Origin: Blastocladiella emersonii ATCC 22665
Lineage: Eukaryota; Fungi; Blastocladiomycota
Assembly: GCA_025594325.1 (NCBI GenBank)
Contig: JANHCV010000009.1
Coordinates: 372,001 to 436,000, forward strand
Direction: 5' to 3'
Length of the DNA: 64,000 nucleotides
Shown here piece after piece: positions 13,899-63,076 of this stretch (position 1 is the first letter of the stretch; every line of letters starts with the position of its first letter). The position numbers were made by a program, and so were the translations under genes. The notes under the pieces are model-generated. The model had not been told where the DNA came from and ran no database searches. It saw only the letters and a list, made by a program, of their open reading frames with translations.

Positions 13899-16189
13899 AT
13901 GAAGTCACACTTGCCGCAACCATCTAATGGGCCTGATCTTGCAGCACTGCCAGCCGAGCTCCTGACGGCGGTGCTGCGACTTGCCCGGCCGCGACCTGAG
14001 CTCTGCTCTGCAACTGGCGAGTTTGTTCCGCTCGTGCGAACCGAACTCGTCCGGAACTCATGGATCAACTCCATGCTTGCGCTTGCCGTCATCAACGCTC
14101 CCCTGTCACCTAAAATCAATCGGCGCTTCTTCTTCGTTTCGGACCTTGCACACCTCGTCACTTGTGACTACAACGACGCTCGCAAGCGGCTTGAGCACGG
14201 CGACCGCGCCTACGACCGCGTCTCGACCTTGTACTCGACACTCCTGACCCGACTGACCGGGCTCGCTGCGCCCGCCCTGCATCGCGAGGATCTCCGCTCA
14301 CTCGCCAACGACGTGAGGGCGACCATTACGGCGGATCAAAGCGATTGCGTGGCTTCGGCCGTCCAAAGCCCCGTCGCGGCGCTCATGCAGCTGTTCGCGT
14401 TCGCAGCTGTGCGCCTCGACCCGCGCCTGCTCTCGGACCTTCTCATCGACGCGCAGCAACAGATCCCTGGCCTGCTCCGGATCAGGGTTACTTACAGATC
14501 GTGGGTTCGGCTCTGCCAGTGCATCAATTTCCACCATAAGGACGACCCGTTCCTCGACCGTCGCATGAATTTGGCCTCGTTCCTCGCGGTCTATGCCGTC
14601 TTCGCTTGGAGCCGCCCGATCCTTCGCGTCTTGACCGATCCGCGACTGGCCCTAGATTGGCTCGAGCTCACGTCGTGGTTCAGCGACGAGTCGGTCGCGG
14701 AAAGCTTCTTTGCGCACATCGAGGGGTCCGCCTACAACGAGGACGTCGAGTCGTGCGCCGAGGTGCTTTCCTTTCTGCTCGCAAATCACTGGACCGGCGA
14801 GTCGGCGTACATCGCAGGCCGCCATCTCGCCGTCCACTTGTGCGTCGCACCGGATGTCCTCGCTCGACTTGTGGAGCTGTACCAGGACGAAGTGCTTTGG
14901 GCACCGCCGAGCGACGACCTTGACGCCATCGGGCAACAGATCAAGCTTGAACACATCCCGTCGGACATGGACAGCCTTGCGACGCTTGACCAGCTCGGGT
15001 TTTTGAACGATAAAGCGTGGGGCTGCGTCATCGTCATGGCAGCTTCTGGGCCTCCCGACGAGTATTGTGGCTTCATCTCTGATCAGCTTGGCGATCGTCT
15101 GGTTGACGCCGCTGTGGCAGGTACTGATGGCTCCTGTTCCGATGCGAGGACTGGAATCTGACACGCGCTTGCCGTGTAGCTTTCACGAGCACGCTTGCGC
15201 ACGACGACGATCCGTGTGCTCCTCAGCAGGTCTTGGCGTTTGTTGGGCAATATCGAGGTGATCCGAACTTGCAGCGTGCGGCTGCCGCCATGGCAGCCGC
15301 GGTGGGCAACAGGATCAAATCGACTTTGAATCCTGAGCTCGCGGGCGACGTTGAGCGGTGCCAGGCGGAGTTGCGCCGGATCATTCAGCGCGTCTTCCAC
15401 ACCCCGCTCACGATGGGACTCTGGACCGCGTTCATCCTGGCCAACGCGTTCGTTTCCCGCTTTGACGTCTCGCTCTGCACGCACTTTGCGTGGATCCCCG
15501 TGGCTGTGCTCACCTCGGACGCTTTCCGCATGGCGGCCACCGAGCTCATGGCCCGCGAAGGCACGGCCTCGCTGTTCCTCGGTCTCATGATCTCTGCGCA
15601 GATCCAGGGCGGCGCGGGCACCCACCACATATCGCACGGCGCGTTCCGCTCGACGTCGACATGCTGCGACCTTTCACAGCAGCGGGCTTACTTTGACGCC
15701 ATGCAGCGGATCGTGGCGATCGATCCTCGTGGGATCATGCGGGCTGTTCCGCAGTGCGCGTTTGACCAGCTGCACCGCTTGCTCGGATCCGTTGATGATC
15801 TTGGGCGCGCTCAAGCGTTTGGGGCCACCGAACCGGGTCCACATACCATTGATCAATGTAGCGCCGTCCAACAGCCGTTTCGCGAGCTGGTGCTCGTTCT
15901 AGCACGGGCGGACCTGGGCGCTTTCATGGACCGGCTTGGCGGCGAGGAGGACGGGAGCGCCCTGCCGCTCTCGTTCTGGCGTGTGCTTGAGCGGGGTTCC
16001 CTCGACCAAGTCAAGGGCACGAACTGGGTTGCGCGCACGGTCGTTCAACTCGACCGACGCGGCACAGCTGGTGAGCCCGTCCGCCCCATCATCGCAGAGA
16101 TCCCCCGTGTCGCTCCTGTGACGACCGCGAGTCACAACTACTTCGCCGCGGTCACGGCTTTGATCCATGGTGATCCGGTATTCGTTTGA
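13899..16189 (+). CDS. F-box-like array family, intact A+B gene
   Basis: LAALPAELLTAVLRLARP N-terminus. Phase-1 intron 15121-15179 joins ORF 13800-15161 in frame to ORF 15233-16189. Confidence 0.8.
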
Positions 16190-16597
16190 TCTGTCACCAA
16201 TTGTAAGTTATTTGTCTGCTCCTTTTGCCGCCGTGCGCGAGGCCTGAGAAGTGAGGGGTCTATGCGTGACCAAGGTTCATGTCATTGTTGCCGCCAACAA
16301 GGTCGCTGCTCCTGCTGCGTGAAAGTGGGCAAGAGCGCGTGAGTCGAGTATACGACACGTTTTCAGCGAGCGCTGCTCGACCCAACGTACGCCCTCGCGC
16401 GACCCGACGTCGCCTCGGCATATCAATTTAGATGGGATCGCGCTCGGGGGTGTACACCGGTCGACGTACATCAGGTCTTGCGCTCAGGATCGTTTCGGCG
16501 ATGCAGCTCGTGCGGACGCGTTGCTCAGGTCGCGTGTTCTGGTGACGCGATCGCCGCTCTCCCTCGCCTCACTGGAACCCCTCACGTATGCAATCTA

Positions 16598-18937
16598 ATG
16601 AAGTCCGACTTGCTGCAACAAACTGCTGGACCTCTCTTCGCAGCGCTGCCGACCGAGCTCTTGACGGCGGTGCTGCGACTGGCCCGGCCGCGACCCGAGC
16701 TCTGCGCGGCGACCGCGGAGGTTCTTGCTCTCGGGCGCACTGAACTGGTCCGAAACTCGTGGCTCAACTCTGTGCTTGCGCATGCCGTGCGCCACTGCCC
16801 CATGTTCTTCGACATCATGATCTACCCGAATCGAGGCGTCTACTTTGAGTCGGACCTCGCACACCTCCTCGGGTACGACTACGACCATGCTCAAGGACTT
16901 CGATGGCCAATCGGGACCACTATCTCCCGGAAGCGGCTTGAGCCCGACGACCCTGACTACGATCGCGTCTCGACCCTGTACTCGGCGCTCGCGACCCGCT
17001 TGACCAAGCTTGCTGTGCCCGTCTTGCGTCGAGACAGCCTTCGCGTCCTGACCAACAACGTTAAGTCGACGATAATGAAAGGCCATCGCCCCTGCGCGGC
17101 ACCGGCCATCCGGAACCCCGTTGCCGCGCTCTTGCAGCTCCTTATCTTCGCTGCTCTGCGCCTCGACGCGCAGCTTTTCTCCAAGCTTCTCATCGCCACG
17201 CAGCGCCAAGTCCTCGGTCTGTTCCGGATCAAGCTCACGTACAAAACTTGGCTTCGCCTCTGCCGCCACATTGGTTTCGAACACTGTGACGGGGATCTCT
17301 ACGAGCGTCGCATAAATCTGGTCTCGTACCTCGCCGTGTACGCCGTCATGGATTGGAGTTGGCCGACACTCGACGTCTTGACAGATGCGCGACTGGGCCT
17401 CGACTGTCGCGAGCTCGTGTCGTGCTTTGATGACGGCGGAATCGGCGCGGGCTTTTTTGATCACGTCAAGCTATCGACATACAGCAGTGCACGCGAGCAA
17501 GCAATTGCTCATGTGCTTACATTCCTGCTTGACAACAACTGGGCCACGTCCCGGTACGTCGCCGAGCGTCATATCTTCGTCCACTTGAGCTGCACGCCGA
17601 AGCTTCTCCAACGTCTCGTCGAGGCGTGGCGGGACAAACGTATTCCCGCTCCGCGGAGCGCCGACCTCGATGCAATCGCGGCACGGCTTGGTAACGAGGG
17701 AATTCCGTTGGACGCGGAGGACCTCACGATCCTGGACGATTTCAAACTTCTCAACGAGAAGGCCTGGGGCTACGCCATTAGCCTGGGTTTTGGGGAACGC
17801 GACGAGGCGTGCTTTGCCTTCATCGCCGAGCGGCTCCGTGATCGTCCTGTCAAAGCCGCAGTTGAGGGTACCGCTGACTGTTTTCGCTTGGACGCGGACG
17901 CGGCCTAACTTGATTGGGGGCGTGTAGCTTTCACTTTTACGCTTGCGCCCGACGGTGATCCGCATGGTCCTCAGAAAGTCTTGTCGTTTGTTGCGCGATA
18001 CCGGGACGAGCAAACTTTGCATCGCGCCGCTGCTTCCATGGCAGCTGCGGCGGGAACCAAGGCCAACTCGCTTCTGGATCCCGGGCTTGTTATCCAACCG
18101 GGCGACGTTGAGCGGTGCCAGGCAGAGCTGCGCCGGATCGTTCGACGTGTCTTTCGTAGCCCACTCTCGTTGGATCTCTGGCCCGCGTTCGTTCTCGCGA
18201 ATGCGTTCGTCTCGCAGTTCGATGTCTCTCTGTGCACCAACTTCGCTTGGCTGCCTGTGGCCGTGCTCAACTCTGATAAGCTTAAAGCTGCGGCGATCCA
18301 GTTCATCGAAACGGAACGAACGGGCCCGCTCCTGCTTGGTCTCATGATTTGCGCGCAGATCCAGGGCAGCGCGGGGCGCGTGACCCTTTGGCATTCAACC
18401 TTTCGCGTGACGTCCGGTTGCTGCGACCTTTCGCGGCAGGGAATCTACTTTGACGTCATGTCGCAAATCTTGGCCATGGATCCACGCGGGATGTTGGCGA
18501 AGATTCCGCAGTGTGCTTTCGATTCCCTGCGCAGACTCCTCGAGTCCGTCGACGACCTCGCACTTGCTCAACCGTTTGATGTCGCCGAGGAGAAGCCGCA
18601 CACGATCTCGACGTGCGATGCCGTGCTGGCACCGTTCTCGAAACTTTTTGACATGCTCGTTGACGAGGACTTGGATGTTTTGATTGATAGGCTTGGCGGC
18701 AAGGATGACGGGAGCGCGCTTCCGCTCTCGTTTTGGCGGGCGCTTCGGAGCTGTCATCTCGATCGCGCCAAGACCACGGGCTGGGTCGCGCACACGGTCG
18801 TGCGCCTCGACAGACGCGGCACCCTCGGTGAAATCGACTCTCGCCCAATCATTTCGGAGATCCGTCGCGCCGCCCCCGCGACGACGGCGAGCCGTTCGTA
18901 CCTCGCCATGGCCATGGCCCTGATTCATGGGGAGTAG
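16598..18937 (+). CDS. F-box-like array family, intact A+B gene
   Basis: FAALPTELLTAVLRLARP. Phase-1 intron 17868-17927 joins A in frame to the B ORF (17981-18937). Confidence 0.8.
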
Positions 18938-19124
18938 GTGGTTCTTTGCAGGTTTATAATATATCGTTCTCGTCTTTGTGCCTTCCGAGCTGCTGCTGAT
19001 CCCAAGGATGATTGACGCGTCTCGCGCCGTGATGGGGACGTTAGAACGGGCTGACCAAGTGAAGTATCGAGCCTGGATTGCACACACGTTTGTTTAAATA
19101 GACAGACGCGTCGCACCTGGTGAT

Positions 19125-19230
19125 CTCGTCCTCCTGATCATCTTGGAGATCCGTCGCGCTGAGTTGGGAACGACCGCAAGTCACGCCCACCTAGTTGCAG
19201 TCGCGGCGCGCATCCATGGAGACTTGGCGA
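19125..19230 (+). pseudogene. Remnant of B-domain C-terminus
   Basis: IILEIRRAELGTTASHAHLVAVAARIHGD matches paralog ends such as IISEIRRAAPATTASRSYLAMAMALIHGE. Confidence 0.6.
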
Positions 19231-19541: not shown

Positions 19542-20501
19542 ATGGTGTTTATTCGCGAACATCGCGACGAAACCGAGGTGACTTGGGCCGCTTTCACTTT
19601 CGCGAAGAAGGTGGACGAGGTAATCGAGGCGACACTTGGCGATGCTGGCGACCAGGCTGCCGAACTCAGCATCGAGCGCTACCAAGACGAGCTGCGTCGC
19701 ATTGCTCAACAGGTTTTCCGCACTCCGATGATTATGGACGTGTGGAGCGCTCATTTACTCGCAAACGCTTTTGTTTCGCACCTTGGTGTCTCGACGTGTA
19801 CAACTTTTGCGTGGGTACCTACTTGTGTGCTTAACGATCCCGTGTTTTTACGTCTGGCAATGGAGCAAATTCCGCGGCTTGACACGGGAATGCTGCTCCT
19901 AAGCCTCATGATTTGCGCACAGCTCCAGGGCGGCGCGGGTCCGCACAAGCTTCCTCGGTCCGGCCTCCGCTACACCTGCAATCGGTGCGAACTTTCGACT
20001 CAGCGGGCTTGGTTCCTTGCCATTGAGCGGCTGCTCTCCATCCATTCGGGCCGGACGCTCCGAGAGCTCCCGCAGTGCGCTTTCAATCAACTTCGCCAGC
20101 TTCTTGACTCGGTTGATGATCTAGCGCTCGCGATGCCGTTCGATGCCCCTGCGCTTGAACCACATCGTCCTTTGGCGTGCGAACCCGTTGCGGAGCCTTT
20201 TTGCAAGCTGCTCGACTATCTCATTGGCTTCGATCTCGCGACCCCCATCGACCGCCTGGGCGGCAAGCATGACGGCAGCTCGCTGCCGATCTCGCTGTGG
20301 CGCGCGCTTCCCACCGGTGCGCTCGACGACATCAAGGACGAGGGCTGGGTCGCGAAGACTGTCGTTGGCATCCACGACCGCGCCACCGTTGGGGGAACTG
20401 ACCCTCGCGCGATCATCTCGGAGGTCCGTCGCGTGGCCCGCGATATGGTTGCCAAGACGAGCTACCTCGAGGCCCTTGCCTCCTTGATTCATCGGGATTA
20501 G
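19542..20501 (+). CDS. F-box-like array family, B-domain-only open copy
   Basis: 319-aa ORF aligning along the whole B domain. Family promoter motif at 19345-19373 and a retained splice acceptor at ~19480, but no A exon. Confidence 0.65.
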   Translation: MVFIREHRDETEVTWAAFTFAKKVDEVIEATLGDAGDQAAELSIERYQDELRRIAQQVFRTPMIMDVWSAHLLANAFVSHLGVSTCTTFAWVPTCVLNDPVFLRLAMEQIPRLDTGMLLLSLMICAQLQGGAGPHKLPRSGLRYTCNRCELSTQRAWFLAIERLLSIHSGRTLRELPQCAFNQLRQLLDSVDDLALAMPFDAPALEPHRPLACEPVAEPFCKLLDYLIGFDLATPIDRLGGKHDGSSLPISLWRALPTGALDDIKDEGWVAKTVVGIHDRATVGGTDPRAIISEVRRVARDMVAKTSYLEALASLIHRD

Positions 20502-21376
20502 TGCCGTTTGATAGCACAGGTTGCTGATATATTTTTAATGACCACTACCACGCGTCGTATGCCCGCTCAAAACGTATGAATAGTGGAGCATGACACAGGG
20601 TAGCTTCGTGGGCAAGGCGCTTCTTTTTCGTTTCGCCGCTACATAGTGATGGCCGACGCGTCTCCAACTCTGAGCTTCTTGTCAGAGGGTACGTCCCTTC
20701 TTTCTTCGCCCTTTTTTGCACTCGGCGTAGCCTTGTCAAAGTCAAGGTCATGACGTAAGGAAACTGACCAGACCTTGCCTCAGCGTTTGTGTATGGGCTT
20801 GGGGTCAGTCGCGACGTAGAGTCGGCCCAGCGTATGATGATGTTTACCGGCAAGTGCTTCGACCAAAATGGTGTCATCACCGCCGCCTTCACCTTTGCTA
20901 GCAAAATCGGCCAAAGAATCGAATCCACTTTCTAAGGCAAGCAGTCCACGGAACTCAGGGTCAGACGCTGCCATCAAGAGCTGCGCCGAATCGCTCACTG
21001 GCTTTTCTGCACCCCGTTGGTCATGGACGTGTGGCACGCGTATCTGCTTGGAAACGCGTTCGTCTCGCGCCTTGATGTCTCAACCTGTACAAACTTTGCG
21101 CGGGTGATTCCTTGCGCTCTTAACAACCCCGTTGTTGGGTTTCAAGCACTCGAACTGACTCAGCGGCAAGACGCTGGAGCTCCGCTTCTCGGCGTCAAGA
21201 TCAACACTCAAATCCAAGGCGGTGCGAGTCAACATGCACTCGCGCGCACTGGGCTCCGCCTCACCTGTGATCGGTGCGATCTCTTGACTCAGCGCGCTTG
21301 GTTCTGGTTGTCGAGCGACTCATCTCCCTGAATTCGGGTCGAATTCTGCGCGACCTTCCGCAGCGCACTTTCAAGC

Positions 21377-21592
21377 TGTTGATGCCGACAGAAGGAGGTG
21401 GGAGACAAGTAGTCAGAGATGTCTATTCCTGCCTTCGGCCCCGAACCCAAGACAGGGAGAGGGGAGAATGGATAACAAAGCAGGGCGCGCCGCAGCGGGG
21501 TGCGGCGGCGCGGGAGCGAGGGATTGCGGGCGGCTCACGCGAGATCAGATGATTGATCATTGCGGTCGTGGCCACATGAACGACACGCAACA
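21377..21592 (-). repeat. 3' LTR (216 bp)
   Basis: Differs from the reconstructed 5' LTR by 6 transitions. Confidence 0.92.
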
Positions 21593-21610
21593 TCACCTCC
21601 CCCCAGACCG
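21593..21610 (-). other. Polypurine tract
   Basis: Minus strand GGGGGGAGGTGA directly abuts the 3' LTR. Confidence 0.75.
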
Positions 21611-24600
21611 TGACCTGAGCGACTTGACGAACCCTTGGTACACCGCGTTCTTGAGCTGGCGACCGGACTGGCTGCGCGTGATGGACGATGGCGGGTCGGG
21701 CGAGGGAGAGCGCGCGCGCTTTGGGTTGGCGCGGGCGGGCGATGAGGCGGGCGAGGACTGCGTGACCGAGAACTGCGACTTGTCAGCCGAGACTTGGCGA
21801 GGAGCAGGATCTTGGCGTGGAGCGGGCACAGGGGAAGACGCGGCGACCTTGGGGGCGAGACGCTGCAGCGAACGCTGGCGCTCGAGCCGGGTGTCGGCCG
21901 AGATCTTCTTGTGGTAGTCGTTGATGGCGCCGGCGGTGTCGAAGCTGCTGGCGGGGATCCACAAGTTCTTGGCGGAGCGATTGGACCAGCGGACCAGGTA
22001 CTCGCGCTCGCCGTTCGCGCCGTCGCAATGACGGAGGATGTCGCGCATGGTGTCCAATTCGCCCAAAGGCGCTGACTCGGGCTGGATGAGGCGCAGGTGG
22101 TGCGCGGGGATCTTCTTGACGAGTGCGCCAGTGGCGACACGGAGCAGGTACGCGCCGCCACGGTTGTGGCGGACCACTGTGTAACGGGCCCTCGTAGCGT
22201 GGGTCGAGGCGGGAGGCGCGGTTGGTGGTCATGCGCATGACGATGGCGCCCACGGGGAAGTCAGTGGCGATGATCTTGCAGTGCTGATCGGCGCGCGCCT
22301 GCACGACAGCGTTGCAGTCGGCGGTGCGCTGCGCAATGGCGGAGTAGATGGACTTGGTCATGAGCTTGAGGCGAGCGAGCTGCTCCTGCTCGGTCATGTC
22401 GCGGAGGGGCGGCTGCGCGCGGTAGTTGCGGAGCGCGTTGGCGGGACGCGCAAATATGAGCGAGAAGGGCGTCAAGCCGTGGCGCGCGTGCGCGCGCATG
22501 TTGTAGGCGTACTGGATAGCCGGGACCATGGCGGGCCAGCGGTTGAGCTGCCCGTTGAGCGAGGGGAGCAGCATCTCCTTGACTGAGCGAACGAGACGCT
22601 CCGAGGCGCCATTGGCCTGCGGGTGGTACGGCAACACAAGGCGGCAGTCAATGCCAGCCATGTTGGCGAGCGAGGCGATGATCTGGTTGGCGAACTCGGG
22701 GCCGTTGTCGGACTGGATGATGCGCGGGAAACCGAACTGGAAGCACGTGGCCAGGAAGCAGGTGGCGACCTCGCCGGCAGACGCGGAGCGGATCGGGTGG
22801 AGCCACGCGAACCGGGTGCAGATGCCAATGATCACAAGCACGTGCGTGTATCCGTTGGGCGAGATGGGCAGCTGCATGCAGTCCATGGACAGGTGGTCGA
22901 GCGGCAGCAGCGCCTCAATCAAGCGCATTGGGTGGAAACCCTGCCGCGTGGCCAAGAACCGCGCGCACGGGATGCAACTGGCAATGACGCGCTGGCAGTT
23001 GGCGAGCATGCTGGACCATTTGTGGCCAAGGACGACGAGCTGCTGCTGTGTGGCCGCGGGACCCGAGTGGCCCCTGTTGTGCACATTGCAGATGATCTGG
23101 TCGCGCTGGTCACGCGGAACGGGCGCCGTGTCGAGGTGCTGCGCAGGCGGGACGGTGCCAATGGGCGAGAACTCTGGCCGCAGCGCGCTACCCTCGGGGG
23201 CGGGTGCAGCGGCAACAACGCGGGCGTGCACGGCGGGCGCGGGTGTTGAAGAAGAGCTGCCCCCATGGGTGGGTGCGGCAGCAAAAGCGCGGGCCCGCTC
23301 CGCGGGCGGGAGCGAGGCTGGCGCGAGGAAGAAGTGTCAAGCACGATTCTCTGCAAGGGAGAGATCGTGCGTCATGAGCTGCTCGAGCTCGCTGTTGCCA
23401 AGGGCACACTCGGGGAGAGACGGCGCGGGAGAGGATCCGGAGGGACCCCCCACCAGTGGGCGCCCACGGGGGGAACGCAATACAGGACAACAGCCGGCGC
23501 GGTTGATGGCGACAAGACGGGCATGGGCGTTGGTATTATACAGGCGCGACAGGATGTCGGGCAGCACGTTCAGGACGCCGGGGAGGTGCGTGACTGAGAA
23601 CAAGAGGGAGAGCAGTGTGTCGAGCCAGTTTTTGAGGATGGGCAACAGGCGCTTCTGCGTGAACATGTGGGTGAGCGCCGCGTGGTCCGTGAACAACGCG
23701 AAACGGCGGCCATAGAGGTAGTAGAAGAAGCGAGTGAGCGCAAAGACAATGCCGAGAAGCTTGCGCTTGGTGGCCGAGTAGTTCTGCTTGGCGGGCTGCA
23801 GAGAGCAAGAGGCAAACAAGATGTAGCGCGGGGACTCGCGGCTACCCTGGAACAGGATGGCGCCAAGACTGACGTTTGAGGCGTCAGTGGCAACAAAGAA
23901 CGGCTTGGAGAAATTGGGCGGCGCGAGACACGGGGCGGCAGCAAGGGCGGCCTTTACGGCGAGGAACGCCTGCTTGCACTCATTGGTCCACACGTTGCAG
24001 ACGTTGAGGTTGATGCGCTTGAGGTTGCTCAGCGCGTTGAGCGGGTGCATGAGGACCGCGGCGAGCGGGATGTAGGCGCGCAGGTAGTTGACAAGGCCGA
24101 GGAACTTCTGGACCTGGTTGCCGGACGTCGGACGTGGCCAGTCGCAGATTGAGACGACCTTGGCCTTGGCGGGCTGCACGCCCTCGGCCAAGACGACGTG
24201 GCCGAGCAGGTGCACGCGTGCGTAGTAGAAGAAGCACTTGGCGGGGTTGAGGTGGAGGTTCCACCGCGTGAGACGGTAGACAACGAGGACAAGGTGCTGC
24301 GTGTACTCCTCGATTGAGGCCAAGAAGATGACGAGATCGTTGATGAAGACGCGCACAAACAGCATGTTGTGGAAGATGTTGGACATGACGGCCTGGAACT
24401 GCGCTGAGAGGGTCTTGATGCCAAACGGGCCGCGCGAAGACAACATTGGGCTGGATAGAGCTGGAATGATGTTGTCAAGGAACAGGTCTGCATGCACGGT
24501 CAGGAACGCTGGGTAGCACCGAGAAGGCTCGCTGCGAACGGGCGTGTGGTTTGCCACAGACGGGACCAAGGCGGCTGCGAAGGGGATCGTTGTGGGTGAC

Positions 24601-24812
24601 GGTGGCGGCGCGGGCCAAGGTGGGGCCAAGGCGGGAGCCGACAATGATGTGGTAGAACTTGTCGAGCAGGTGCGCAAACAGGCTGGTGGCAGACGCCGGC
24701 AGGAGGGCGAGGACACAGAGGTGGTGGGCGAGCAGGGGCTGGGAGCGGGGAATGCTGTCAACCGCGCGGGCAGGCAAGGAGACAAACTTGGAGCGGGAGC
24801 GCTTGAGGTCAC
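21593..24812 (-). pseudogene. pol: pol remnant: RT C-half, RNase H, integrase (HHCC, DDE), chromodomain
   Basis: PFGIK..FQAVM..VFINDL (YxDD decayed); ATDASNVSLGAILFQ; FTDHAAL; HNRGH..CIPC; QSDNGPEF; YHPQANGASER; EYLVRW..NLWIPASSF. Broken by frameshifts. Confidence 0.9.
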
Positions 24813-26433
24813 CCGCCAAACCCATGGCGAGCAGACCCGCCAGCCGGGCCTTGACCAGGTCGCCCCTCAGGTCCTTGAGCATGGCGAAGATGGCGAGGAT
24901 GGGCGTGTTGTCGCCGTACACCACAAAGCCACACTTGTGGAGCTGGTGGCTGTGCGCCTTATTGCAGAGCCCCTCAAAGCAGAAGCAGAAGGCGCACAGG
25001 CCAGGGCTGGCCACGGCCACAGTACTGAACTTGGTCTCGAGACCCACGGGCCCGATGGGCGCCACGGCCGCGTGGTAGTTGCGCGGGGCGCGCTCGCGCA
25101 CAGCGGAGTGGGAGCGCAAGCGGGACTGGGGACGCAAGCGGGACCGGGAACGCGAGCGCTGACGCTCGTCGCGGCCACCACGATCCTGATTGTGGCGGTC
25201 ATCAGGCACGGCGAGAAGCGCACGCGGGGCGTCGCAGGACGCGCGGTTGTCACGGCTGGCCTTGCCCTTGTCGTAGTGGCCGTTCTTATTGTGGGCGCCG
25301 CCGCCGCGGTGGTTGTTGTAGTTGTTGTTGTTCTTGTTGTTGTAGTTGTTGTAGTTGTTGTTGTTGTTGTTGTTGTTGTAGTTGTTGTTGTTCTTGTTCT
25401 TGTCCTTGTCCTTGTCGCCCAACTTGGTGCGCACAGCCAGCACAGCAGACAAGGCGTCGCCAGCGTCGCCAGCAGGCGCCTTGCTGCGCAAGGCAATCTG
25501 GACGTAGCCGTGGGGGCCAATGAGGTTGACGAGTGTGAGCAGGGTGTGCTTGGAGGTGGCGGTGCCAAGCGTGTGGCAGAGGGCGTTGTAGACGTCGTCC
25601 TTGATGCCCTTGACTGAGTTGAGGAACGAGGAGAGGAGCGCGGGAGGCAGGTGGCCGGTGGGATCCAGGCAACCCCCCTCGTGGAGGCGCCGGACAAACA
25701 CAACGCGGTGGCGCTCAAGGGTGAGGCCCGGAGTGGCGGGGAACAAGAGGTCGAGGTAGCAGACAATGGCAGCGCGCTCCATGTGGTCAAAGAAGTGGGC
25801 GATCAGCTGGTGCTCCTTGAGACTGGCGCCCTTGCGGACCATCGACTTGTACACAACCTGGGCGTCGTGGCCGACGGTGGTGGTGGCAGCGTTGAGCAGC
25901 TTGTACAGGTTGTGCAGCAAGTAGAGGTTGCGGAGGTTGCGGAGGAAGGTGGCTGGGTCTTGGCAGTTGCCGCGGGTTGGGTGGCAGTAGTTGATGCGGG
26001 TGCTCTCGATGTTGGCGCGCAGCTGCTTGTTGATGCTGGTGGTCAACGCAGCGGGAGCGGCTGGCGAGGCGGCGGCTGGCGCGGCTGGGGGCGCCTCGGC
26101 AGGCAGCATGTTGACGGCGAGGTTGATGATGTTGTTGTAGCGCGAGTGCGCGGCGATGAGCACGTCCAGCGCCTTGGCGGCCTGGGCCTGCAGCTTGGGT
26201 GGGTGGGTGGCTGACGTGCCATTGCCCTGGGGCAGCGTGGGTTGCGCGGCGGCGTCGATGGCGGCTGAGCAGGCAGCGAATTGCTTACCAAGTAGCTGGC
26301 GCAGCTCGGCGGCGCGCGCGCGTGCGGCGGGCACGGCCTGGGGGTCCTTGGCCGCAGTGCTGCAGGTGCCGGGGAGCGTGGAGATGTCGCTGCAGAGCGC
26401 TGGCAAGATGGTGAAGGTGGGGTTTGAGGCCAT
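24475..26433 (-). CDS. gag: gag-like ORF of the retrotransposon with Asn-rich tract
   Basis: ATG at 26433, just inside the 5' LTR boundary; long ORF upstream of pol. Confidence 0.65.
   Translation of the reverse strand: MASNPTFTILPALCSDISTLPGTCSTAAKDPQAVPAARARAAELRQLLGKQFAACSAAIDAAAQPTLPQGNGTSATHPPKLQAQAAKALDVLIAAHSRYNNIINLAVNMLPAEAPPAAPAAASPAAPAALTTSINKQLRANIESTRINYCHPTRGNCQDPATFLRNLRNLYLLHNLYKLLNAATTTVGHDAQVVYKSMVRKGASLKEHQLIAHFFDHMERAAIVCYLDLLFPATPGLTLERHRVVFVRRLHEGGCLDPTGHLPPALLSSFLNSVKGIKDDVYNALCHTLGTATSKHTLLTLVNLIGPHGYVQIALRSKAPAGDAGDALSAVLAVRTKLGDKDKDKNKNNNNYNNNNNNNNYNNYNNKNNNNYNNHRGGGAHNKNGHYDKGKASRDNRASCDAPRALLAVPDDRHNQDRGGRDERQRSRSRSRLRPQSRLRSHSAVRERAPRNYHAAVAPIGPVGLETKFSTVAVASPGLCAFCFCFEGLCNKAHSHQLHKCGFVVYGDNTPILAIFAMLKDLRGDLVKARLAGLLAMGLAGDLKRSRSKFVSLPARAVDSIPRSQPLLAHHLCVLALLPASATSLFAHLLDKFYHIIVGSRLGPTLARAATVTHNDPLRSRLGPVCGKPHARSQRAFSVLPSVPDRACRPVP
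25312..25410. repeat. (GTT)n-rich microsatellite encoding poly-Asn in gag
   Basis: Runs of gttgttgtt interrupted by gta/ctt. Confidence 0.9.
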
Positions 26434-28086: not shown

Positions 28087-28277
28087 CGCGCTGTTCTGCG
28101 TCGCGCTGTTCTGCGTCGCGCTGTTCTGCGTCGCGCCGTTCCGCGTCGCGCCGTTCCGCGTCGCGCCGTTCCGCGTCGCGCCGTTCCGCGTCGCGCCGTT
28201 CCGCGTCGCGCCGTTCCGCGTCGCGCCGTTCCGCGTCGCGCCGTTCCGCGTCGCGCCGTTCCGCGTCGCGCCGTTCC
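28087..28277. repeat. 15-bp tandem repeat, ~12.7 units
   Basis: 3x CGCGCTGTTCTGCGT, then 9x CGCGCCGTTCCGCGT plus a partial unit; no spacers. Confidence 0.95.
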
Positions 28278-29335: not shown

Positions 29336-29389
29336 ACGCTCGAGGAGCTGGCGAACAAGGCGACGCTCGAGGAGCTGGCGAACAAGGCG
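29336..29389. repeat. 27-bp tandem duplication (TLEELANKA x2 on + strand)
   Basis: ACGCTCGAGGAGCTGGCGAACAAGGCG twice. Confidence 0.9.
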
Positions 29390-30421: not shown

Positions 30422-30450
30422 GTCTCCAGCCCGGCGTGAGACAGTCACGC
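30422..30450 (+). promoter_or_regulatory. Family upstream motif GTCTC-N11-GAGACAGTCACGC
   Basis: About 105-130 bp upstream of ATG 30554. Confidence 0.6.
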
Positions 30451-32876: not shown

Positions 32877-32995
32877 ACTTGCATTCCCGTCGTCCATGTT
32901 GTTCTTACGAATATATTCGCGGTGTTGTTTTTGCCCCAATGTACGAAACGTGTCGCGCGAGTTCCGCTCCTCGGGCTGCTCCCCGGGCGAAACGC

Positions 32996-33022
32996 GTCTC
33001 CAAATTGGCGTGAGACATTACG
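32996..33022 (+). promoter_or_regulatory. Family upstream motif variant GTCTC-N11-GAGACATTACG
   Basis: About 80-105 bp upstream of ATG 33101. Confidence 0.55.
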
Positions 33023-33173
33023 TGAGTCGATCGAGCTGATCCCGCCCGAAGCGCTCGGCAGTTTCGTCTCTGCTCCTCCACCTCCAAATAATGCCAGCGC
33101 ATGAAGTTAGACTTGATGCAATCTGACGCTAGCCCTCGGCTCTCAATGCTTCCGGTCGAAATCCTCTTGACGG

Positions 33174-36184: not shown

Positions 36185-36213
36185 GTCTCACACTCGGCGT
36201 GAGACAGTCACGC
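36185..36213 (+). promoter_or_regulatory. Family upstream motif GTCTC-N11-GAGACAGTCACGC
   Basis: About 80-105 bp upstream of ATG 36290. Confidence 0.6.
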
Positions 36214-51848: not shown

Positions 51849-52023
51849 GAGGTATGGTATGGTGAGGATGGAATACACTCGTAGTGCTTGAGAACGAACT
51901 GGCAGCGAAACGGTAGGGTGAAGGCGGTGTGAAGGGCGACGCGTTTCGACGCGCCGTTCACACGACGAGCGCCGACCCGTCTTGCCTGCTCTCCTCACCC
52001 TCGAGCCCCCTCACACCACATCA

Positions 52024-53289
52024 ATGTTCAGCTCATGCAACTCGCCGCAACGCGCTGGCGTCGCTCAAACGGACTCGCCGGTCGGCCTTGTCGCGCTTCT
52101 GTCTGATCTGCTGGTCAATGTCGTCGCCCTCGCGTTTCCCCACCACCGCGTTCTTACGGCCAGCCGCGAGCTTTCTGATGAACTCTCCGGCTCGAAGCGC
52201 CTCAAGCGAATCTGGATCAACGCTCTCTGCTCAATCGACACACCTCCGCAGGTCGTTGACTTGTATCGAAAGAACTTCAAGTTGACCTTGCGCACCAATC
52301 TTGTTGCCTACCTCGAGTAGAAGTTGATTCGGGCGTCTTCCGGTTCCTTGCAAAATCTTTCCCCATACGGACCAATGCGTCGCGCTCAGCCCGTTCCGAG
52401 GCCGCTCATTGTCGCAGCATCGGACTGTCTCTTTGACTGTATCCAGGCGGTCTTCCGTTCCCACGAACGTCTCGTGCCGCAGGAGCGGGTCGAACAAGCC
52501 CAAAAGTTTTTGGACCGCCAGATTACCGCGATCGGCCCTCGCATGCAGCTCTTCACCGCTTCCCCTCTGTTCTCGGTCATCCAGCTCATTGTCAACCTCG
52601 CTAGTCGTGGCGACTGCACGGGTGCGAGCGCACTTCTCGCCCAGACTGCCGATCGCGCCAAAGTCGCGTTCAGCGTGACTCTCCCGCTCCTTGCGTGGGC
52701 CCGATTGACTGTCGGGTCCTGCAATGCTTTGTGGGAGGTTTTAGCGCGTCAAAATTCCATGTTCGACGTGTCGCTTTCCTTCACTGCGTATCTCGGTCTT
52801 GCAGCGCTGAGAGGCTGGGACGCGGGTACTTTCAACTTGGTTGCCGAGGGGCCCCATGCATTCGACCGGGCGGCACTCATTACGCTCCTTAGCGACGACA
52901 CGTTCATCGTACCAGCCCTACGCCATCTCCCCGCTGCCCAACCACACCCAGACATTTTCAATTTTATCATGGATTGGCTACTCGAGCATGCATGGAAGGA
53001 CGGCCGCTTGGTCGATGGTAGACCGCTCGAGCACTACCTATTTGGACCATATTTTCAATCATATGTTCAACATCGCAATCCCCCTCAGAAGCGTTACGTA
53101 ACGCGGCAACGGAGCGTGCGTGCCGCAAGTCTTGCTGCCACGGCAATTTCTGCTTGCATCTCCGCTCTAGCTCTCGCTTCGGGTTCCGCAAACGCTTCAA
53201 GCTCTGCCACGGTCGGGAGCTCGAGCTCGGGGGCCGACAGCTCATTTCAACAGGATTTGCTTCCAGGGGATCGCGACAAGCCCAAATAG
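52024..53289 (+). pseudogene. F-box-like family, A-only subfamily, premature TAG
   Basis: MFSSCNSPQ..RTNLVAYLE* (52318-20; paralogs have Q); the frame continues as ORF 52324-53289. Confidence 0.75.
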
Positions 53290-53535
53290 GCTGAGGTATC
53301 CTTCTGTTTTGTAGTGTTGCAATGATGTCCCTGCCTAACACAGAAATAATTTGAATTTATTTGCGTGAGCCGAGCAGAGGAAAGTTAACTACGACAGCCG
53401 GGACGAAGTGTGGCGCAACGCGTGTTGAAAGGTTTGACAGGTCGTCGGCATGCGATCGCGGTTCTCACGCTTGCGCCCCCGTTCCTCGCTCTCCTTCGCT
53501 CGATCACACAACATCGTTCGCTCCACCCAAATACA

Positions 53536-54846
53536 ATGTTAAGCTCATGCAACTTGCCGCAACACGCCGGCCTTGCCCAGGTCGAGTCGAAGCTCGACCT
53601 TCTCGCGCTTCCTTCCAAACTGATCACCAGCGTCGTCGTCCTTGCGACGCCTCGCTCGGCTGTCGCCGCGGCTTCTCGCGAGCTATTTGAGTCAAACGAT
53701 TCGAAGCGCGTCAAGCTTGCTTGGATCAATACCTTCTGCACCATCAACACGTCTGCGGACTGCCTTCGCGCGTATGAAGATTACTGGAAGCTGAGCATGC
53801 GCTCGAACCTCATTGCATTCCTCGAGCAGTGCTGTCTCGACCGCCGCACACCCTTAAATGTCCCCGGTGGCGGTCATTACAAGTCCATGTGCCCGTTGGA
53901 GTCGACAGTGGGCCCGCCCCTCATGCTGGTAGCCTTGCATTGTTTGCTTGACTCGGTTCCTGCCTTGTTTCGAACGCTCGATGCTCCGCCGACCAAGACA
54001 CGTATTAAGCAGGCCCAGGCTGTGTTTGACCATCAGCTCCGTACCGCAGCAACTACCAATCGCGTACCGCTTTTCACCAAGTTCCCGGCCGTCTCGATCA
54101 TTCAACTTCTCGTCCATGTCGCCTGCCACTGCGACGTGATCAGTCTCGAGTTCGCGATCAAACACGTTACTGATCATGCAAGCGGACTGCTTTACATCAC
54201 TCTACCGCTCTTCACCTGGGCTCGCGCGACTGTCAGGTCGATCAATTTACTCTGGGAAGGGATGCTGCGCCCCGAACCCAATTTCGATAACCCGGCTCGT
54301 TTCACCGTATATCTCAGCTTGTCCGCGCTGAGCCGTTGGGACGCGCCTGCCTTTTGGGTGGCGACCACAACTCCGCTTGCCCACGACCGGCAGTACCTCG
54401 CCGTAGTTCTCCGCTGCCACATGCTTGTCACGCTTGCGCTCATCGAGCTCAAGATTTTGAAGCATGTGTCCGCTCGCCACGTCATATCCATCTTGGACTG
54501 GCTCATGGAGTTCACGTGGGAGGATGGCCGCACGTTCAACAGCTGCCCGCTCGAGTATTTCTTGAAGGCCCCGCACCTGACCGAAGCGCTGAAATTTGTT
54601 GAAGGTCACCCCAAACTTCACTCAAACCCGATCCAATCCACGACCGGGCCCAACGATCCCGCAACCCAGCCGGACTCCGCTTTCACCACCGCGCAGACCC
54701 CGGCCCAGTCTTCAGCCTCCGCACTTGCACCGATGTCGGCAGCAGTTGGAAGCTCCGCAGTCTCTCCAGTCGCAGGCTTCATTTCGGACATTAACATGTA
54801 CTCGGCCAAAGCCGCGCTTCCTGCGCTCCGCGCAATGTTGGAGTAG
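53536..54846 (+). CDS. F-box-like family, A-only subfamily, intact
   Basis: MLSSCNLPQH..LLALPSKLITSVVVLATP..ASREL..LAWIN; single exon. Confidence 0.8.
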   Translation: MLSSCNLPQHAGLAQVESKLDLLALPSKLITSVVVLATPRSAVAAASRELFESNDSKRVKLAWINTFCTINTSADCLRAYEDYWKLSMRSNLIAFLEQCCLDRRTPLNVPGGGHYKSMCPLESTVGPPLMLVALHCLLDSVPALFRTLDAPPTKTRIKQAQAVFDHQLRTAATTNRVPLFTKFPAVSIIQLLVHVACHCDVISLEFAIKHVTDHASGLLYITLPLFTWARATVRSINLLWEGMLRPEPNFDNPARFTVYLSLSALSRWDAPAFWVATTTPLAHDRQYLAVVLRCHMLVTLALIELKILKHVSARHVISILDWLMEFTWEDGRTFNSCPLEYFLKAPHLTEALKFVEGHPKLHSNPIQSTTGPNDPATQPDSAFTTAQTPAQSSASALAPMSAAVGSSAVSPVAGFISDINMYSAKAALPALRAMLE

Positions 54847-55625
54847 TCTGAAAAATGCGGCTTGTTTGGTGATTTGAAAACCTTTGGCGAGTTCGCTTAC
54901 CGTCTCATTCATTCATTCACCTGGCCAACAGTTCACTTGCTATCCGATCATCGATCCAGGCAGTACGCCTGCTCTTCATACGAATACATATCTTAGTTAA
55001 GCCTCCACGAAAGGTCCTGACCACAAGTGTGGCGCAACGCGTCCTGAAAGGTCTGACAGGCCGGTGGCGCAGGCAGACATCGCGGCGTCGAGGAGCGGCG
55101 CGCCAGCTCTCGCACCACTCGTAGATTAAATGAGTCGCGGAAACGTCGCTGAATGGCCAACTGTTGTGATGGGCCGCGACGACCAACGCGCTATAGTGAA
55201 CGGATCGCTTGGTACAACGAACATGCGATCACGCGAGTGGCGCAACGCGTCTCGCGTCATGCTCGCACACCAAAATTCGCCCGAGGCCGCTCTTCTTGAG
55301 CGATTCGCCGAGTGCGTAACTTGACTAATCCCCAACGAGACTCGCATCCCGCTGAACTGGCGCACCGCGGCTGGGCGTGGCCGCCCTCCCTCGCGCTCGC
55401 TCACACTCCCGCCTCACGGTGCGACTAAGAAAGAAAAATGCTGCGATCTAAGCTTCGCAGGCGTTTTGGTTCGAGCTTAGTACCGAGCAAATCCATTGCC
55501 AGGCGGCTCAGTGTTCGCAGGTTGGATATGCCAGTTGGTCAACACGAACAAGAGATGTGAGAAACTGAATTATATTAAACAAAGAAATGTAGAAATAAAG
55601 AAAGCGGGAGCGTTTCAACCGCTTC

Positions 55626-58600
55626 TTAGCAGTTGTGGTGGATCGCGACCATGGCGTCCGCGTACTCGCGCGATGCGACCGTGTTGGGCGCAACGCGGCG
55701 GATCTCGTCAATGGTCGCGCGACTCGTGGTGCGGTCGCGCATCGCCAACACTACGGCCTGCGCGACCCAGTGCGCGTCTTTGACGCCATCGAGCGCGCCA
55801 GAGGGAACTGCGCGCCAAAAGGAAACGGGGATCAAAATGTCTGGTGCATCGGAAGCGGATGGCTCGTTCAATTTGTCAAGCAGAACCGCAAAGTCGGTGC
55901 GAATCAGAAGCTGCATTAGATCGTAATACGGTTGGCGCAGCGAGTCGCATGCAAATTTGCATGCGCTGAAGTTGTCTTGATTTGGGTGCGCGCGCACCGG
56001 ACGCTGTTTGGTGAGGCGCCCCATTGATTTGAGAAAATTGACCAGCATCGAATAAGCATCCTCGGAAGTCGCTGAAGTGCATCGGGCTTCAACGCCAAGA
56101 GCTCGCGCACAGTGTCGAGCCAGACACGTTGACCTGCAAGCTGGCATTCGCCACAAGAGGTCGCGGGCGGAATAGCAAGCGGGAAGCTGTGGTGACCAAC
56201 CAGGTTGGACATTTGCGCGCAAATCATAGCGCCAAGAAATGAAACAATGCTGTTAGACTCGCTCATCAGCGCGATCGCAGAGTCCCGGATTGAGCGGTCC
56301 TGCAGGACGGCAACAGGAACCCATGCAAGTGCAGCACAGTTTGAGGCCGAAAGCTGGAGAACGGTTGCGTTGGCAAGGAGAAAGACGTCGAAGAGATCGG
56401 CCTGAAGCTCGCTCGAGAAGACAGCCTCCATGATCTTGCTGGGTGCTGGAAATTGTTCGTGACGTAAAATATTTGAGCGCGGCGACTTGAACTCGCGATG
56501 CAGGACTGAAGCGAACGCGTGGCTGATACTAAGCATGTTGCTCGGACAATGAAGTCGGGCAAAAGCCAGCACATGTTGAGGCGCCAGCTGAAGCAGATTG
56601 AGCTCGAGCGAAAGCCTGAAAGCTGTTAGGTATCGGGTTATTACTGGTGAGTTTCCACTGTACACTTGCTTTGGTCCAGCGCGTTAACATACCCTTTGCT
56701 ACGGCAATTTCAAAACCATCACCGACAAGTCGCGCGGCGAGGGTAGCGAAAGGACCCGTCGGCCCGCCTTGGTCCTCGGACAACGCAAGCCCAAGAACGC
56801 ATGGCCAAGCGTCCTCATTTATGAGATTCAGTCGATGCAAGATTTCGAGGCCATCCTTGTCCAGGTCAAACTCCTGGTTTTCGAGTTCGACGAAAACGGT
56901 GAAGCGCGAGGTGCTGTCGATTGAGCTAGTCACAAGCTGGGGCTTGAGTTCCGCGAGCTTAGCAAGAACAGTCGGGTACTCATCGAGGAATGAGATAAGG
57001 TGCACCCCGTTGAAGACCCGGCGCTCAAATGCCCAAGATTCACGGAAGAGCCACTAGCGATGTTGAGCACCCAGCGGCGCATTCTCACGAGCGGCATTCT
57101 CACGAATGTGGCGCACCACAGTTCCCGTTCCAAGCAAGCGAGCTCAACCCGAAGGCCAGCCCCACCTTCGTCTCCACGTCGCTCTGCATACATACACCTC
57201 GACTTGTTACTCAATGAGACTTGCTGCAACACATTCGGGAGACGCTTGAATACCCGCTGAATTTTTTTCATACGAGTCAAGGACTTGACGAACAGCTCCA
57301 CTGCGGACGAGCCGTTTCGCGAGGGTGCTCGCGCAACTTCAATGACGCGCGCATCAGCAGTGCTATCATTTGATTTATGCTTCGTTTTAGAGCGTCAGGA
57401 CTCCAGCTGAGTGAAGGTTGAAAGGCGACGCGCGCGTGCTTGAACTGTTGGTAGTTTTCATGGTCTAGGTCACCCTCAAGTTGGTTGACGCTGTTGATCG
57501 TCTCTGATCATGATGTTCAGGGCCATGTTGATCGTTCCAGGCGCTGATATCAAGAGCTGACGCTGAAGGCGACGTGGGCGATGCTCGCTGCCACCATCCT
57601 CCGCGAGAATCCGGCTCAAACGAGCTCAGCCGCTTGCGGATGCCCTGGGCAACTTATTGCAACAAGTCCCGCAGGTTCATAGCTCGTGGGGAGTGTATAT
57701 GTAGTGGAGTTCCTCGACAGGCCATGAACGGGCTCGCTTGCTCGGAACGGGAACTGCGGTGCGCCACATTCGTGAGAATGCCGCTCGTGAGAATGCGCCG
57801 CCGGGTGCTCAACATCGCTACTGGAGCATCAGCGCAATGTCGCACGGAAGGTGAGCCTCGAAATCAGTTCGTTGGATGCTGTACAGGAGTGTCGAGGAGA
57901 GATGGTCATCCTTGAAAAGCTTTGTAAGCCACTTCTTGCTGAGCCCGACCACCGGGAGCCCGAGGAGCACTTGGAGTAGGGGTAAATTCCACAAAAATAC
58001 CGAGAGCACGCCCAAGAACTGCACAAGGTTACAGTTGACCTCGTCTTCCGTGATGGTGCTGACCCAGTGCGAGCCGCGATTGAAAAGCCGGTTGTGCGAA
58101 ACTTCCGAGAGAATGGCCCAGGAGCGCAGCGGCAGGCGGATCTGGAATAGGATTCGAGGCGCCGATTGTGCTGCTGCATTGAGAAGTCGAGCAGCCGATG
58201 GCACATCAAGTCGACCTACGGCGACAGCAAGGAGTTGGAAGAGAGAAGGAACGGGCTCGTCCGCACAAGGCCGCTCGGGCTCGAACTCGTTAACCGACTC
58301 GTCAATTTCCTGGGACAAACTGTCCAATCCAGTGGTCGAATCGCGGAGAAACGAGGACGCCATTGGAAGAATGTGGCCAAACATCGTAAAAAAGAGCGAC
58401 ACGACGTGTTCGTAATCATGGTCGCTGGGCGTGACTCGAATTGGTGCTTCCGCTGGGCGGCAGTACTGGAGAAGCGTGCCGCTGTCTGAGGCGAAACATT
58501 CGTCATAGCCAGGATAGCCCTCGTGCAACTCGTCCGAAACGCCAAGTTTGAGGAGCTGAATAATCCAATCACGCTTCACAGGAGCATTGTTCGCCACGGT

Positions 58601-58741
58601 GTAGAACTCCCGCGTTGCAAAGCAGATGGCAGCCTGCGGCTGGGCAAGCTGGAAAACCTGCGTGAGAGTCTCGACGGGGAGGGCAGCAAGACCGGCGCGG
58701 CGGTTCCGTTGCGCTAAGTTTTTTTCATTGGTTTCATTCAT
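55626..58741 (-). pseudogene. Divergent A+B family copy with MITE insertion and frameshift
   Basis: LAALPVETLTQVFQLAQP; A split at LQ|W by the MITE; phase-1 intron after AVAKG; B in two frames. Confidence 0.85.
57056..57819. mobile_element. 764-bp MITE, 88-bp TIR, 3-bp ACT/AGT TSD (PHIS/Harbinger-related, Pangu-like)
   Basis: Ends AGCGATGTTG..CAACATCGCT; ACT at 57053-55 and 57820-22; removal restores CTC CAG TGG CTC (LQWL). Confidence 0.88.
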
Positions 58742-59136
58742 GGTGGGTGATACTGACGATGGCGAGGGGAGCCTAGCACTCGCAAAGCGAACTTCGTCGG
58801 AACGCAAACGAACTCCGCCTCGAGGACCAGGTGACGTCACGCGGGTGGCGCAACACGTCTCACCAAAAACACTCAGCAATAAATGAGCTATCTGGATGCG
58901 TCGACGCGGTGAAACCGCTATGATAGAAGAGTGGGCAAACTGGATTGACGAGAGTGCTGGCGAGTTCATGCCCGTTGGCGTCGCGCGGGAGGCCCACGGC
59001 GGCGGCGACGCGTTCCTGCACAACGTCCTCTCGATCATCTCCAAGAACAACTATTACGCAGCCATGTTCCTCATCTTTGCAGTACATGGCTCGCCTCTCC
59101 AGTCTCCCCATTCGCACCAACCATGGTGGTCTCAGT

Positions 59137-61580: not shown

Positions 61581-61780
61581 TCGTTGGAACGATACGCGCC
61601 GCGCCACTCACGTGTAATGACCCTCGCCTCGTCCTGCCCTTGCTTGTGCGTCGCCCAAGTGGCCACTTGGACATTTCAGGGCGAGAAGATCAGATGTGTA
61701 TTGCAAGAGGACTGATGCCAAAACGAGTGAGTGAACCAATAGCTGTGCAGCAACAAGAGTCATTGAGCAAGCGAGTTCGC

Positions 61781-63076
61781 TTAGTTGAACATGCCGCGAA
61801 GCCCAGGCAGCGCGGCCATGAGCGACGAGACATCGATATCCGAGTCCGAGCGCGCCGTGGTGCCACGAGAAGAAGCGGGCGCTGTAGCGAGGGTCGGGAC
61901 CTGCTCAAGAGAAGGGCTTGGGGCAGGCCGATCCGCGACCGAAGCAGGAGGAGCGGGCCGAGCCGCGCGCTTCTTGAACTTGGGACGACGTCGGAGTTTG
62001 GGGTGGTTCTCAACATGGTCGAGTACGGCGGACAGGTGCGGGGCAAGTATAAGGTACCCCTGGAGCGAAACACCGTCAAAGGTACGGCCGCCCTCGCACC
62101 AGGTGTTTTCGATGAGCCAGTCAAGGATACGGATAACTTTGTCGGGGCGGACCTGCTCGAGACCCGGGAGATCGGACAGCGCAAGCGTGATGAAGAATTC
62201 ATTGCGAAGAATCTCGACGACGCGCGGCCGGTCAAACGCGAACTCGGTTTCGGTGAGCAGCTCGAACGAGTCCGCGTCCCAGCGGCTCAGCGCGGCGAGA
62301 GCGAGATACACGGTCAAGCGGACGGGGAAGTTGCAGTCCGGGTTGAGGGGCAGGTGGTCCTCCCACTGCTTGTTGATTGACATGGCGGACGCACGGGCCC
62401 ACGTGAAGAGCGGAAGGTACACGCCAAAGATCGCGTGCGCGTGCTGGGCAGTGTGCATCAGGACAAAACGGAGGACATGGGCGTGGCCGAGGCACGAGAC
62501 GTGGACCAAAAGCTGAACGATCGAGGCAACCGGGTTCGTCGTGAAGAGCGGGACACGATCCGCGACCGCTACTTCACGGATCTGCCGGTTCACAAGGGCT
62601 TTGACTTGTTCGACGCGCTTCTGCGTGAAGGGCGCATCAGACGTGTGAAGTACGGCAGGAACTGAGTCGAGGAGGCGACGCAGCGCCATGACGATGATGC
62701 TTGGAAAATCGGATGGATCGACGGGGCGCGTTGTCTCAGGGCGAGTGTTGCTGCGGACGGGCGCGCGGCTATCAATCTTGCACTGCTCGAGGTACGCGAT
62801 GAGGTTGGAGCGCATGCTCAAGTTCCAGCGGCCGCGATACGTTTGAAGCACGTGCGCGGGTGTGGAGATTGAAAACTGCGTATTGATCCAGGCGAGTTTG
62901 AGGCGGTTTGCCTTGCTCGGCTCGGCAAGCTCGCGGCTGGCCGAGATCACGCAGAGGCGAGGCATCACGAGAACCACGACGTCGGCAAGCAAGTCGGACG
63001 GCAGATCGTGAAGTCCGAGCGGCTGGTCGGCTGGAGCGGCCTCGGCGTGTTGCGGCGAGTTGCATGAGCTTAACAT
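61781..63076 (-). CDS. F-box-like family, A-only subfamily, intact
   Basis: MLSSCNSPQH..LHDLPSDLLADVVVLVMP..ASREL..LAWIN; paralog of 53536-54846. Confidence 0.8.
   Translation of the reverse strand: MLSSCNSPQHAEAAPADQPLGLHDLPSDLLADVVVLVMPRLCVISASRELAEPSKANRLKLAWINTQFSISTPAHVLQTYRGRWNLSMRSNLIAYLEQCKIDSRAPVRSNTRPETTRPVDPSDFPSIIVMALRRLLDSVPAVLHTSDAPFTQKRVEQVKALVNRQIREVAVADRVPLFTTNPVASIVQLLVHVSCLGHAHVLRFVLMHTAQHAHAIFGVYLPLFTWARASAMSINKQWEDHLPLNPDCNFPVRLTVYLALAALSRWDADSFELLTETEFAFDRPRVVEILRNEFFITLALSDLPGLEQVRPDKVIRILDWLIENTWCEGGRTFDGVSLQGYLILAPHLSAVLDHVENHPKLRRRPKFKKRAARPAPPASVADRPAPSPSLEQVPTLATAPASSRGTTARSDSDIDVSSLMAALPGLRGMFN

Follow-up and report, generated by a model that had tools for sequence, protein, structure and literature searches.

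An array of putative F-box-type adaptor genes with unrecognised helical modules in the zoosporic fungus Blastocladiella emersonii

F-box and F-box-like proteins are the substrate adaptors of SCF (Skp1-Cul1-F-box) ubiquitin ligases. In nematodes (FBXA/FBXB) and in plants, the F-box families are expanded, clustered, lineage-specific and fast in divergence, and many of their members are pseudogenes. Here we describe a gene family of Blastocladiella emersonii ATCC 22665 that resembles these nematode and plant families in its lineage-specific expansion, its pseudogene-rich tandem arrays and its rapid divergence. The array studied here lies in a stretch of 64,000 nucleotides (assembly GCA_025594325.1, JANHCV010000009.1:372,001-436,000), which we call the window and to which all coordinates refer unless stated otherwise. 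The window is eukaryotic, GC-rich DNA, and its location was fixed by a single profile-search match encoded inside it, the product of gene G11 (P0001). Like the proteins of the Pfam families F-box and F-box-like (PF00646, PF12937), the products of the family carry LPxE(L/I)L at the N-terminus in a three-helix segment of ~45 residues, followed by a repeat-type binding domain. Because these products join an F-box-like module at the terminus to a repeat solenoid, and because the family is large and its paralogs are divergent, we regard them as putative SCF substrate adaptors, an assignment that we hold with moderate confidence.

A first-pass annotation, made from the sequence alone, had counted 12 copies plus one remnant on both strands, and the same count was obtained by tblastn with long open reading frames (ORFs) of the family and by profile hidden Markov model (HMM) scans of all six frames of the window. 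The division into six intact copies (G1, G2, G3, G5, G9, G11) and six disabled ones (G0, G4, G6, G7, G8, G10) was confirmed as well, the disabling lesions being stops, frameshifts or transposon insertions (Table 1). Ten copies bear module A, in which the N-terminal LP.ELL motif and the sparse anchors described earlier are visible in alignments; module B is present in nine copies or pieces, including two B-only copies and one B remnant. The housekeeping blocks of the window contained no additional family copies in the same tblastn and six-frame HMM scans. Codon bias is indeed weaker than in the neighbouring genes, with a GC content at third codon positions (GC3) of 0.64-0.75 in the family vs 0.92 in the genes for methionyl-tRNA synthetase (MetRS) and a PRP21-like splicing factor. 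All sequencing runs found were DNA runs of the one source sample, and short-read contigs from two of them showed zero differences from window positions 51950-57103. The stop of G8 is therefore real DNA and not an assembly error, and so are the lesions of G10 within this interval, which covers its B part and the C-terminal portion of its module A.

Modules A (~410 amino acids, aa) and B (~320-335 aa) are two exons of one gene. The intron between them is 59-85 nt long and in phase 1, and its position and phase are the same in G1, G2, G5, G6 and G7. The frame of A stops at G|GTAC, and the frame of B restarts after (T/A)(G/T)TAG|C, which reads GTGTAG|C in G1, G2 and G5. The spliced products of these three genes have no internal stops (lengths in Table 1). 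Beside the full genes there are an A-only subfamily, to which G8, G9 and G11 belong, and the B-only forms G3 and G4, and the wider family has members with other C-terminal architectures. A palindromic block, ACGCGTCTC-N-GGCGTGAGAC, was seen at ~30417-30450, 32992-33025 and 36181-36212, which places it some 80-140 bp ahead of G5, G6 and G7, respectively; upstream of G1 and G2 there is a related sequence containing ACGCGT. The context of the start codon (ATGCAAnCTnATGAA) is also conserved among the copies.

Undescribed and largely unannotated, the family is restricted to two lineages of the Blastocladiomycota, those of Blastocladiella and Catenaria. When a module A profile was scored against 1.84 billion representative proteins, only 36 clusters were found at E<=0.001, and all 30 clusters that were looked up are "hypothetical proteins" of B. 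emersonii ATCC 22665 or Catenaria anguillulae PL171. Module B was detected in members from B. emersonii only. Word-indexed homolog searches returned nothing or the genome of the query itself, the first of them being limited to 1.75x length (full proteins have ~745 aa) and the later two covering the best 8000 candidates. Between 51.8 and 63 kb of the window, the public annotation calls G11 alone, as the 344-aa protein P0001 that lacks the F-box-like start. G9 is absent from the GenBank annotation, and the product of G3 has no record in the public protein collection; G1, G2, G5 and G9 appear to be unannotated since none of them turned up among the representative proteins. Two more loci on the same chromosome (~641-652 kb, L001:4832-15056; ~754-762 kb, L003:10013-18371) each hold three to four further A+B copies in tandem, but only one gene model is called at either locus; one of these two models, P0002 (1425 aa), fuses two adjacent genes. 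Neither F-box nor ankyrin genes are mentioned in the paper on the B. emersonii genome.

The consensus of 35 N-termini of the wider family reads L..LP.ELL..VL.LA.PR....A.REL....V...W, with conserved hydrophobic positions. Both this alignment and the AlphaFold2 (AF2) model show a helical module of ~45 residues led by LPxE(I/L)L; in the model, short helices at residues 19-28, 33-38 and 42-46 follow directly after LP. The motif is located at the extreme N-terminus before the repeat domain, as in typical F-box proteins. When each of the 35 N-terminal pieces was scanned singly against 24,736 Pfam models, 11 weak matches were obtained, six of them in F-box families: F-box-like in four members (E 0.0061, 0.033, 0.059 and 0.26) and F-box_4 and F-box-like_2 in one each. 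These matches span profile positions 2-37 to 2-43 of 47 and thus extend beyond LPxEL. By our own arithmetic for 24,736 models and 35 sequences, the probability that a chance match of E 0.006 lands in this small set of F-box families is roughly 1e-4. Among the 100 named clusters closest to residues 8-68 of G1 in a protein language-model atlas, 88 are F-box or F-box-like clusters (score 0.84, a value rated as a lead only). The Catenaria member P0033 carries the automatic UniRef name "F-box domain-containing protein", and in a shape search of the ESM Atlas F-box proteins accounted for five of ten family sets (Skp2, FBXO31 and plant F-box clusters) at template modelling (TM) scores of 0.23-0.33. 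The earlier designation of the motif as F-box-like therefore stands on convergent evidence, all of it below threshold, while a match at the gathering score and the retrieval of a solved F-box chain were not achieved. We consider homology of the N-terminus to the F-box likely.

The AF2 model of module A, computed with 47 family sequences, is confident (predicted local distance difference test, pLDDT, 88.1; predicted TM score, pTM, 0.87) and consists of ~25 helices and a few short strands. Foldseek found no significant match of module A in the PDB, and in the AlphaFold DB clusters it found two Catenaria relatives only; apart from these relatives, whole-model searches of PDB, AlphaFold DB clusters and Swiss-Prot gave generic helical-repeat matches. 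In a search independent of Foldseek, ankyrin-repeat domains stood at the top and through much of the list, with 200-260 residues aligned at Z 5-7.5. The top matches included KANK3 (Z 7.5), IkappaB-zeta (7.3), latrotoxin, p100, ankyrin-1, RNase L, Notch, FEM1B and ASB7, and NOMPC, Swi6 and a DARPin were found as well. In language-model space, module A as a whole lies near fungal "F-box" and ankyrin clusters, and the best rows from a viral fold library are pandoravirus F-box and ankyrin families. For module B, the model built from six sequences is all-alpha and less confident (pLDDT 70.5). Its nearest folds are TOG and ARM domains (Z 6.6-7.6), and Foldseek gave no match at E<=1e-3; in this predicted structure, module B looks like a solenoid of the HEAT/TOG type. 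The structure prediction proposed in the first-pass annotation yielded a confident model for A, which resembles an ankyrin-type solenoid, and a lower-confidence HEAT/TOG-like helical model for B; no F-box chain was among the matches listed in the whole-model searches. CxxC and H/C-x-C pairs, largely conserved across 15 sequences of module B, map to the two loops that were modelled with low confidence (residues ~149-152 and ~208-213 of G3; in G1 and G2 the first pair is CC). These pairs might form a metal site.

Table 1 Copies of the F-box-like family and mobile elements in the array (window coordinates).
Feature	Position	Strand	Description
G0	1-1176	-	A-module pseudogene, two in-frame stops, continues beyond left window edge
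G1	13899-16189	+	Intact A+B, 743 aa; exon 1 13899-15120, intron 15121-15179 (GT..AG, phase 1), exon 2 15180-16189
G2	16598-18937	+	Intact A+B, 759 aa; intron 17868-17927
B remnant	19041-19223	+	C-terminal end of B module
G3	19542-20501	+	Intact B-only ORF, 319 aa, begins at ATG
G4	20828-21381 plus 29749-30204	+	B-only, split by 8.4-kb insertion, also one stop
G5	30554-32876	+	Intact A+B, 745 aa; intron 31797-31881
G6	33101-36026	+	A+B pseudogene, many stops and frameshifts; intron retained 34653-34714; extra sequence early in B exon
G7	36290-40199	+	A+B, two stops in A, fold-back element insertion; B exon ~39187-40199 still open
G8	52024-53289	+	A-only subfamily, one in-frame stop at 52318-52320
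G9	53536-54846	+	Intact A-only subfamily gene, 436 aa
G10	55632-58744	-	A+B pseudogene; TIR element splits A module; B part frameshifted
G11	61781-63076	-	Intact A-only subfamily gene, 431 aa
Ty3/gypsy retrotransposon	21377-29789	-	Reverse transcriptase (RT), RNase H and integrase domains; breaks G4
Fold-back element	37233-38799		In G7; 351-bp inverted arms, 99.7% identical; looks very recent
TIR (terminal inverted repeat) element	57051-57824		In G10; 774 bp, 93-bp inverted ends 95.7% identical

Each full gene encodes a divergent F-box-like start of three predicted helices (~45 aa), an ankyrin-like solenoid that together with this start makes up module A and, after the phase-1 intron, module B. 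We hypothesize that the N-terminus would dock on Skp1 of the SCF ubiquitin ligase, and the two solenoids would bind the proteins to be ubiquitinated, with paralogs differing in what they bind. Several results weigh against this assignment. No family member reaches the gathering score of Pfam (best 16.7 bits vs 24.3), and the copies of the window itself have no Pfam match even at E<=1. Neither the N-terminal profile nor two single N-termini matched PDB sequences at E<=10, and a solved F-box chain was absent among the structural matches listed in the whole-model searches. Where F-box helix 3 typically has a Trp, the family has "REL" instead. Z stays below 8 for every ankyrin and TOG match, within the stated noise range of the tool for helical repeats, and the internal repeats of A are barely detectable (best E 0.0017 in profile-profile comparisons of A segments). 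As, in addition, none of the Ank families of Pfam was found at E<=1 in 47 A-module sequences, we describe the body of A as an ankyrin-like solenoid without assigning it to the ankyrin family. Furthermore, the proposed docking module is missing from the B-only genes, five of the six intact copies have no entry in the public annotation, and at 60% GC long ORFs form readily. The sub-threshold F-box matches, the blank PDB profile search, the missing F-box chain among the structural matches listed and the side-by-side occurrence of A-only, B-only and other C-terminal architectures could also be explained by a lineage-specific helical-repeat scaffold that is unrelated to ubiquitin ligases and whose LP.ELL resembles the F-box by convergence. 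However, the weak matches concentrate in F-box families far beyond chance and extend over the greater part of the profile, F-box clusters supply 88% of the neighbours found for the N-terminus with the language model, and the motif precedes the repeat domain at the very terminus. We therefore consider such a scaffold unlikely and a role as SCF adaptors the somewhat probable one.

The history of the family was traced in a tree, in which the copies of the window fall into three old lineages: G1, G2 and G5; G0 and G10; and G8, G9 and G11 together with two genes elsewhere on the chromosome. Five Catenaria sequences form one well-supported clade inside the family, adjoining B. emersonii genes with other C-terminal regions. 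Because this clade is nested, the family is older than the split of Blastocladiella and Catenaria and was expanded separately in each. In a self-comparison of the window, the copies share 65-75% DNA identity, which is limited to the gene bodies, and even the closest and youngest pair, G1/G2, has a synonymous divergence (dS) of 0.69. Nonsynonymous divergence (dN) is clearly lower than dS in every intact pair; pairwise dN/dS between intact copies, from sequences that are few and saturated, lies at 0.36-0.55 in module A and at 0.24-0.41 in module B, and every stretch of 50 codons stays below 1 (maximum 0.68). Intact copies are thus under purifying but relaxed selection. The birth-and-death array postulated in the first-pass annotation is therefore supported on the side of death, whereas no recent births are seen in the window given the dS of the youngest pair. 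The pattern is one of old births and continuing deaths rather than rapid turnover. The array may have grown by tandem duplication, with loss of modules leading to the A-only and B-only forms. Today it occupies a low-GC island rich in transposons, and its copies are being eliminated by stops, frameshifts and the insertion of transposons.

These data bear on a more far-reaching idea, in which the proteins would serve fungal non-self surveillance: each divergent F-box/solenoid adaptor would recognise a protein of a virus, a parasite or a foreign cell in allorecognition for ubiquitination, diversifying selection would drive the array, and genes with B or A alone would serve as decoys or modulators. 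Several features are in line with such a role: the tandem arrays are rich in pseudogenes, the proteins diverge quickly, codon bias is weak and each of the two species has lineage-specific expansions. So are, by analogy only, the expanded nematode and plant F-box families and the giant-virus F-box/ankyrin families at the top of the viral fold search. The dN/dS of 0.24-0.55 without any 50-codon window above 1, however, speaks against diversifying selection, and turnover in the window is not recent. The defence, allorecognition or effector function suggested earlier thus found no direct support, and we regard it as very unlikely.

Mobile elements split G4, G7 and G10 (Table 1). The long terminal repeats (LTRs) of the Ty3/gypsy retrotransposon are ~97% identical (21377-21592 vs 26456-26596 plus 29715-29789), the 3' LTR being split by a nested element of 3.1 kb at 26597-29714. 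The TIR element in G10 belongs to a multi-copy family resembling miniature inverted-repeat transposable elements, as short-read contigs reach 2-10x the depth of its flanks there and variant copies were seen. The Ty3/gypsy, fold-back and TIR elements are all located within the arrays, where GC content is lower than elsewhere in the window. Family units as transposon cargo, an outcome that the first-pass annotation had named as speaking against its proposal, were rejected by self-comparison: no LTR or TIR flanks any unit, and the LTR and TIR pairs present belong to separate elements inserted in G4, G7 and G10. A viral origin was also set aside, as the profile search found no viral homologs of module A among 1.84e9 representatives and the genes have spliceosomal introns and are found in two genera. 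That the array is decaying, essentially functionless DNA with "intact" copies being ORFs not yet hit, or else that its units are carried by a transposon or by a virus that became endogenised, would agree with half of the copies being dead, most being unannotated, a family GC3 not above that of the resident retrotransposon ORFs and the position of the arrays in transposon-rich, lower-GC islands, but it is highly improbable in view of dN staying clearly below dS in the intact pairs, the conserved position, phase and splice sites of the intron, the retention of the family in two genera, the units free of flanking repeats and the lack of viral homologs in the profile search.

Of the genes surrounding the array, MetRS is encoded at 11407-13680 and the PRP21-like splicing factor at 49923-51848, and ten further ORFs of the window had no Pfam match. 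At 41421-43877 (-), where the window reaches its highest GC content, an 818-aa ORF (GC 0.75, GC3 0.875) has no Pfam match. Tandem segments of ~1.3 kb at 4791-6097 and 6830-8128 share 70% DNA identity and are unrelated to the array family; their ORFs have no Pfam match either.

If the F-box interpretation is correct, Blastocladiella possesses a large and almost wholly unannotated set of ubiquitin-ligase adaptors whose binding modules are not recognised by databases. The known proteome of a model zoosporic fungus would grow by many genes, fungi would have a counterpart to the F-box families expanded in nematodes and plants, and two new helical domains, the body of A and module B, would be available for structural study. 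Should non-self surveillance prove true, SCF ligases would be used in a manner resembling innate immunity in an early-diverging zoosporic fungus. Even if the F-box interpretation is wrong, the family clearly exemplifies how annotation can overlook a large set of orphan genes.

In comparison with described systems, the family differs from proteins of PF00646 and PF12937 in its scores of 11-17 bits vs the cutoff of 24.3, in the replaced Trp of helix 3 and in body domains that belong to no Pfam family. Unlike the nematode and plant F-box families, it occurs in a zoosporic fungus and carries ankyrin-like and HEAT/TOG-like solenoids at the C-terminal side; its B. emersonii duplicates are old, and positive selection was not seen at the available resolution. 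The combination of a cullin-docking box with an ankyrin-type solenoid follows the same logic as the pandoravirus F-box/ankyrin families, poxvirus ANK/PRANC proteins, Legionella AnkB, ANK-SOCS-box (ASB) proteins and FEM1, and F-box/ankyrin adaptor families are at the top of the viral and PDB fold searches, weakly (TM <=0.33, Z <=7.5). In contrast to the viral and bacterial F-box/ankyrin adaptors, the genes of the family are cellular, contain introns and are common to two fungal genera, and they share neither an ankyrin Pfam match nor sequence homology with them. The family is therefore best filed among the lineage-specifically expanded F-box-type adaptors, with unrecognised binding modules and a putative function.

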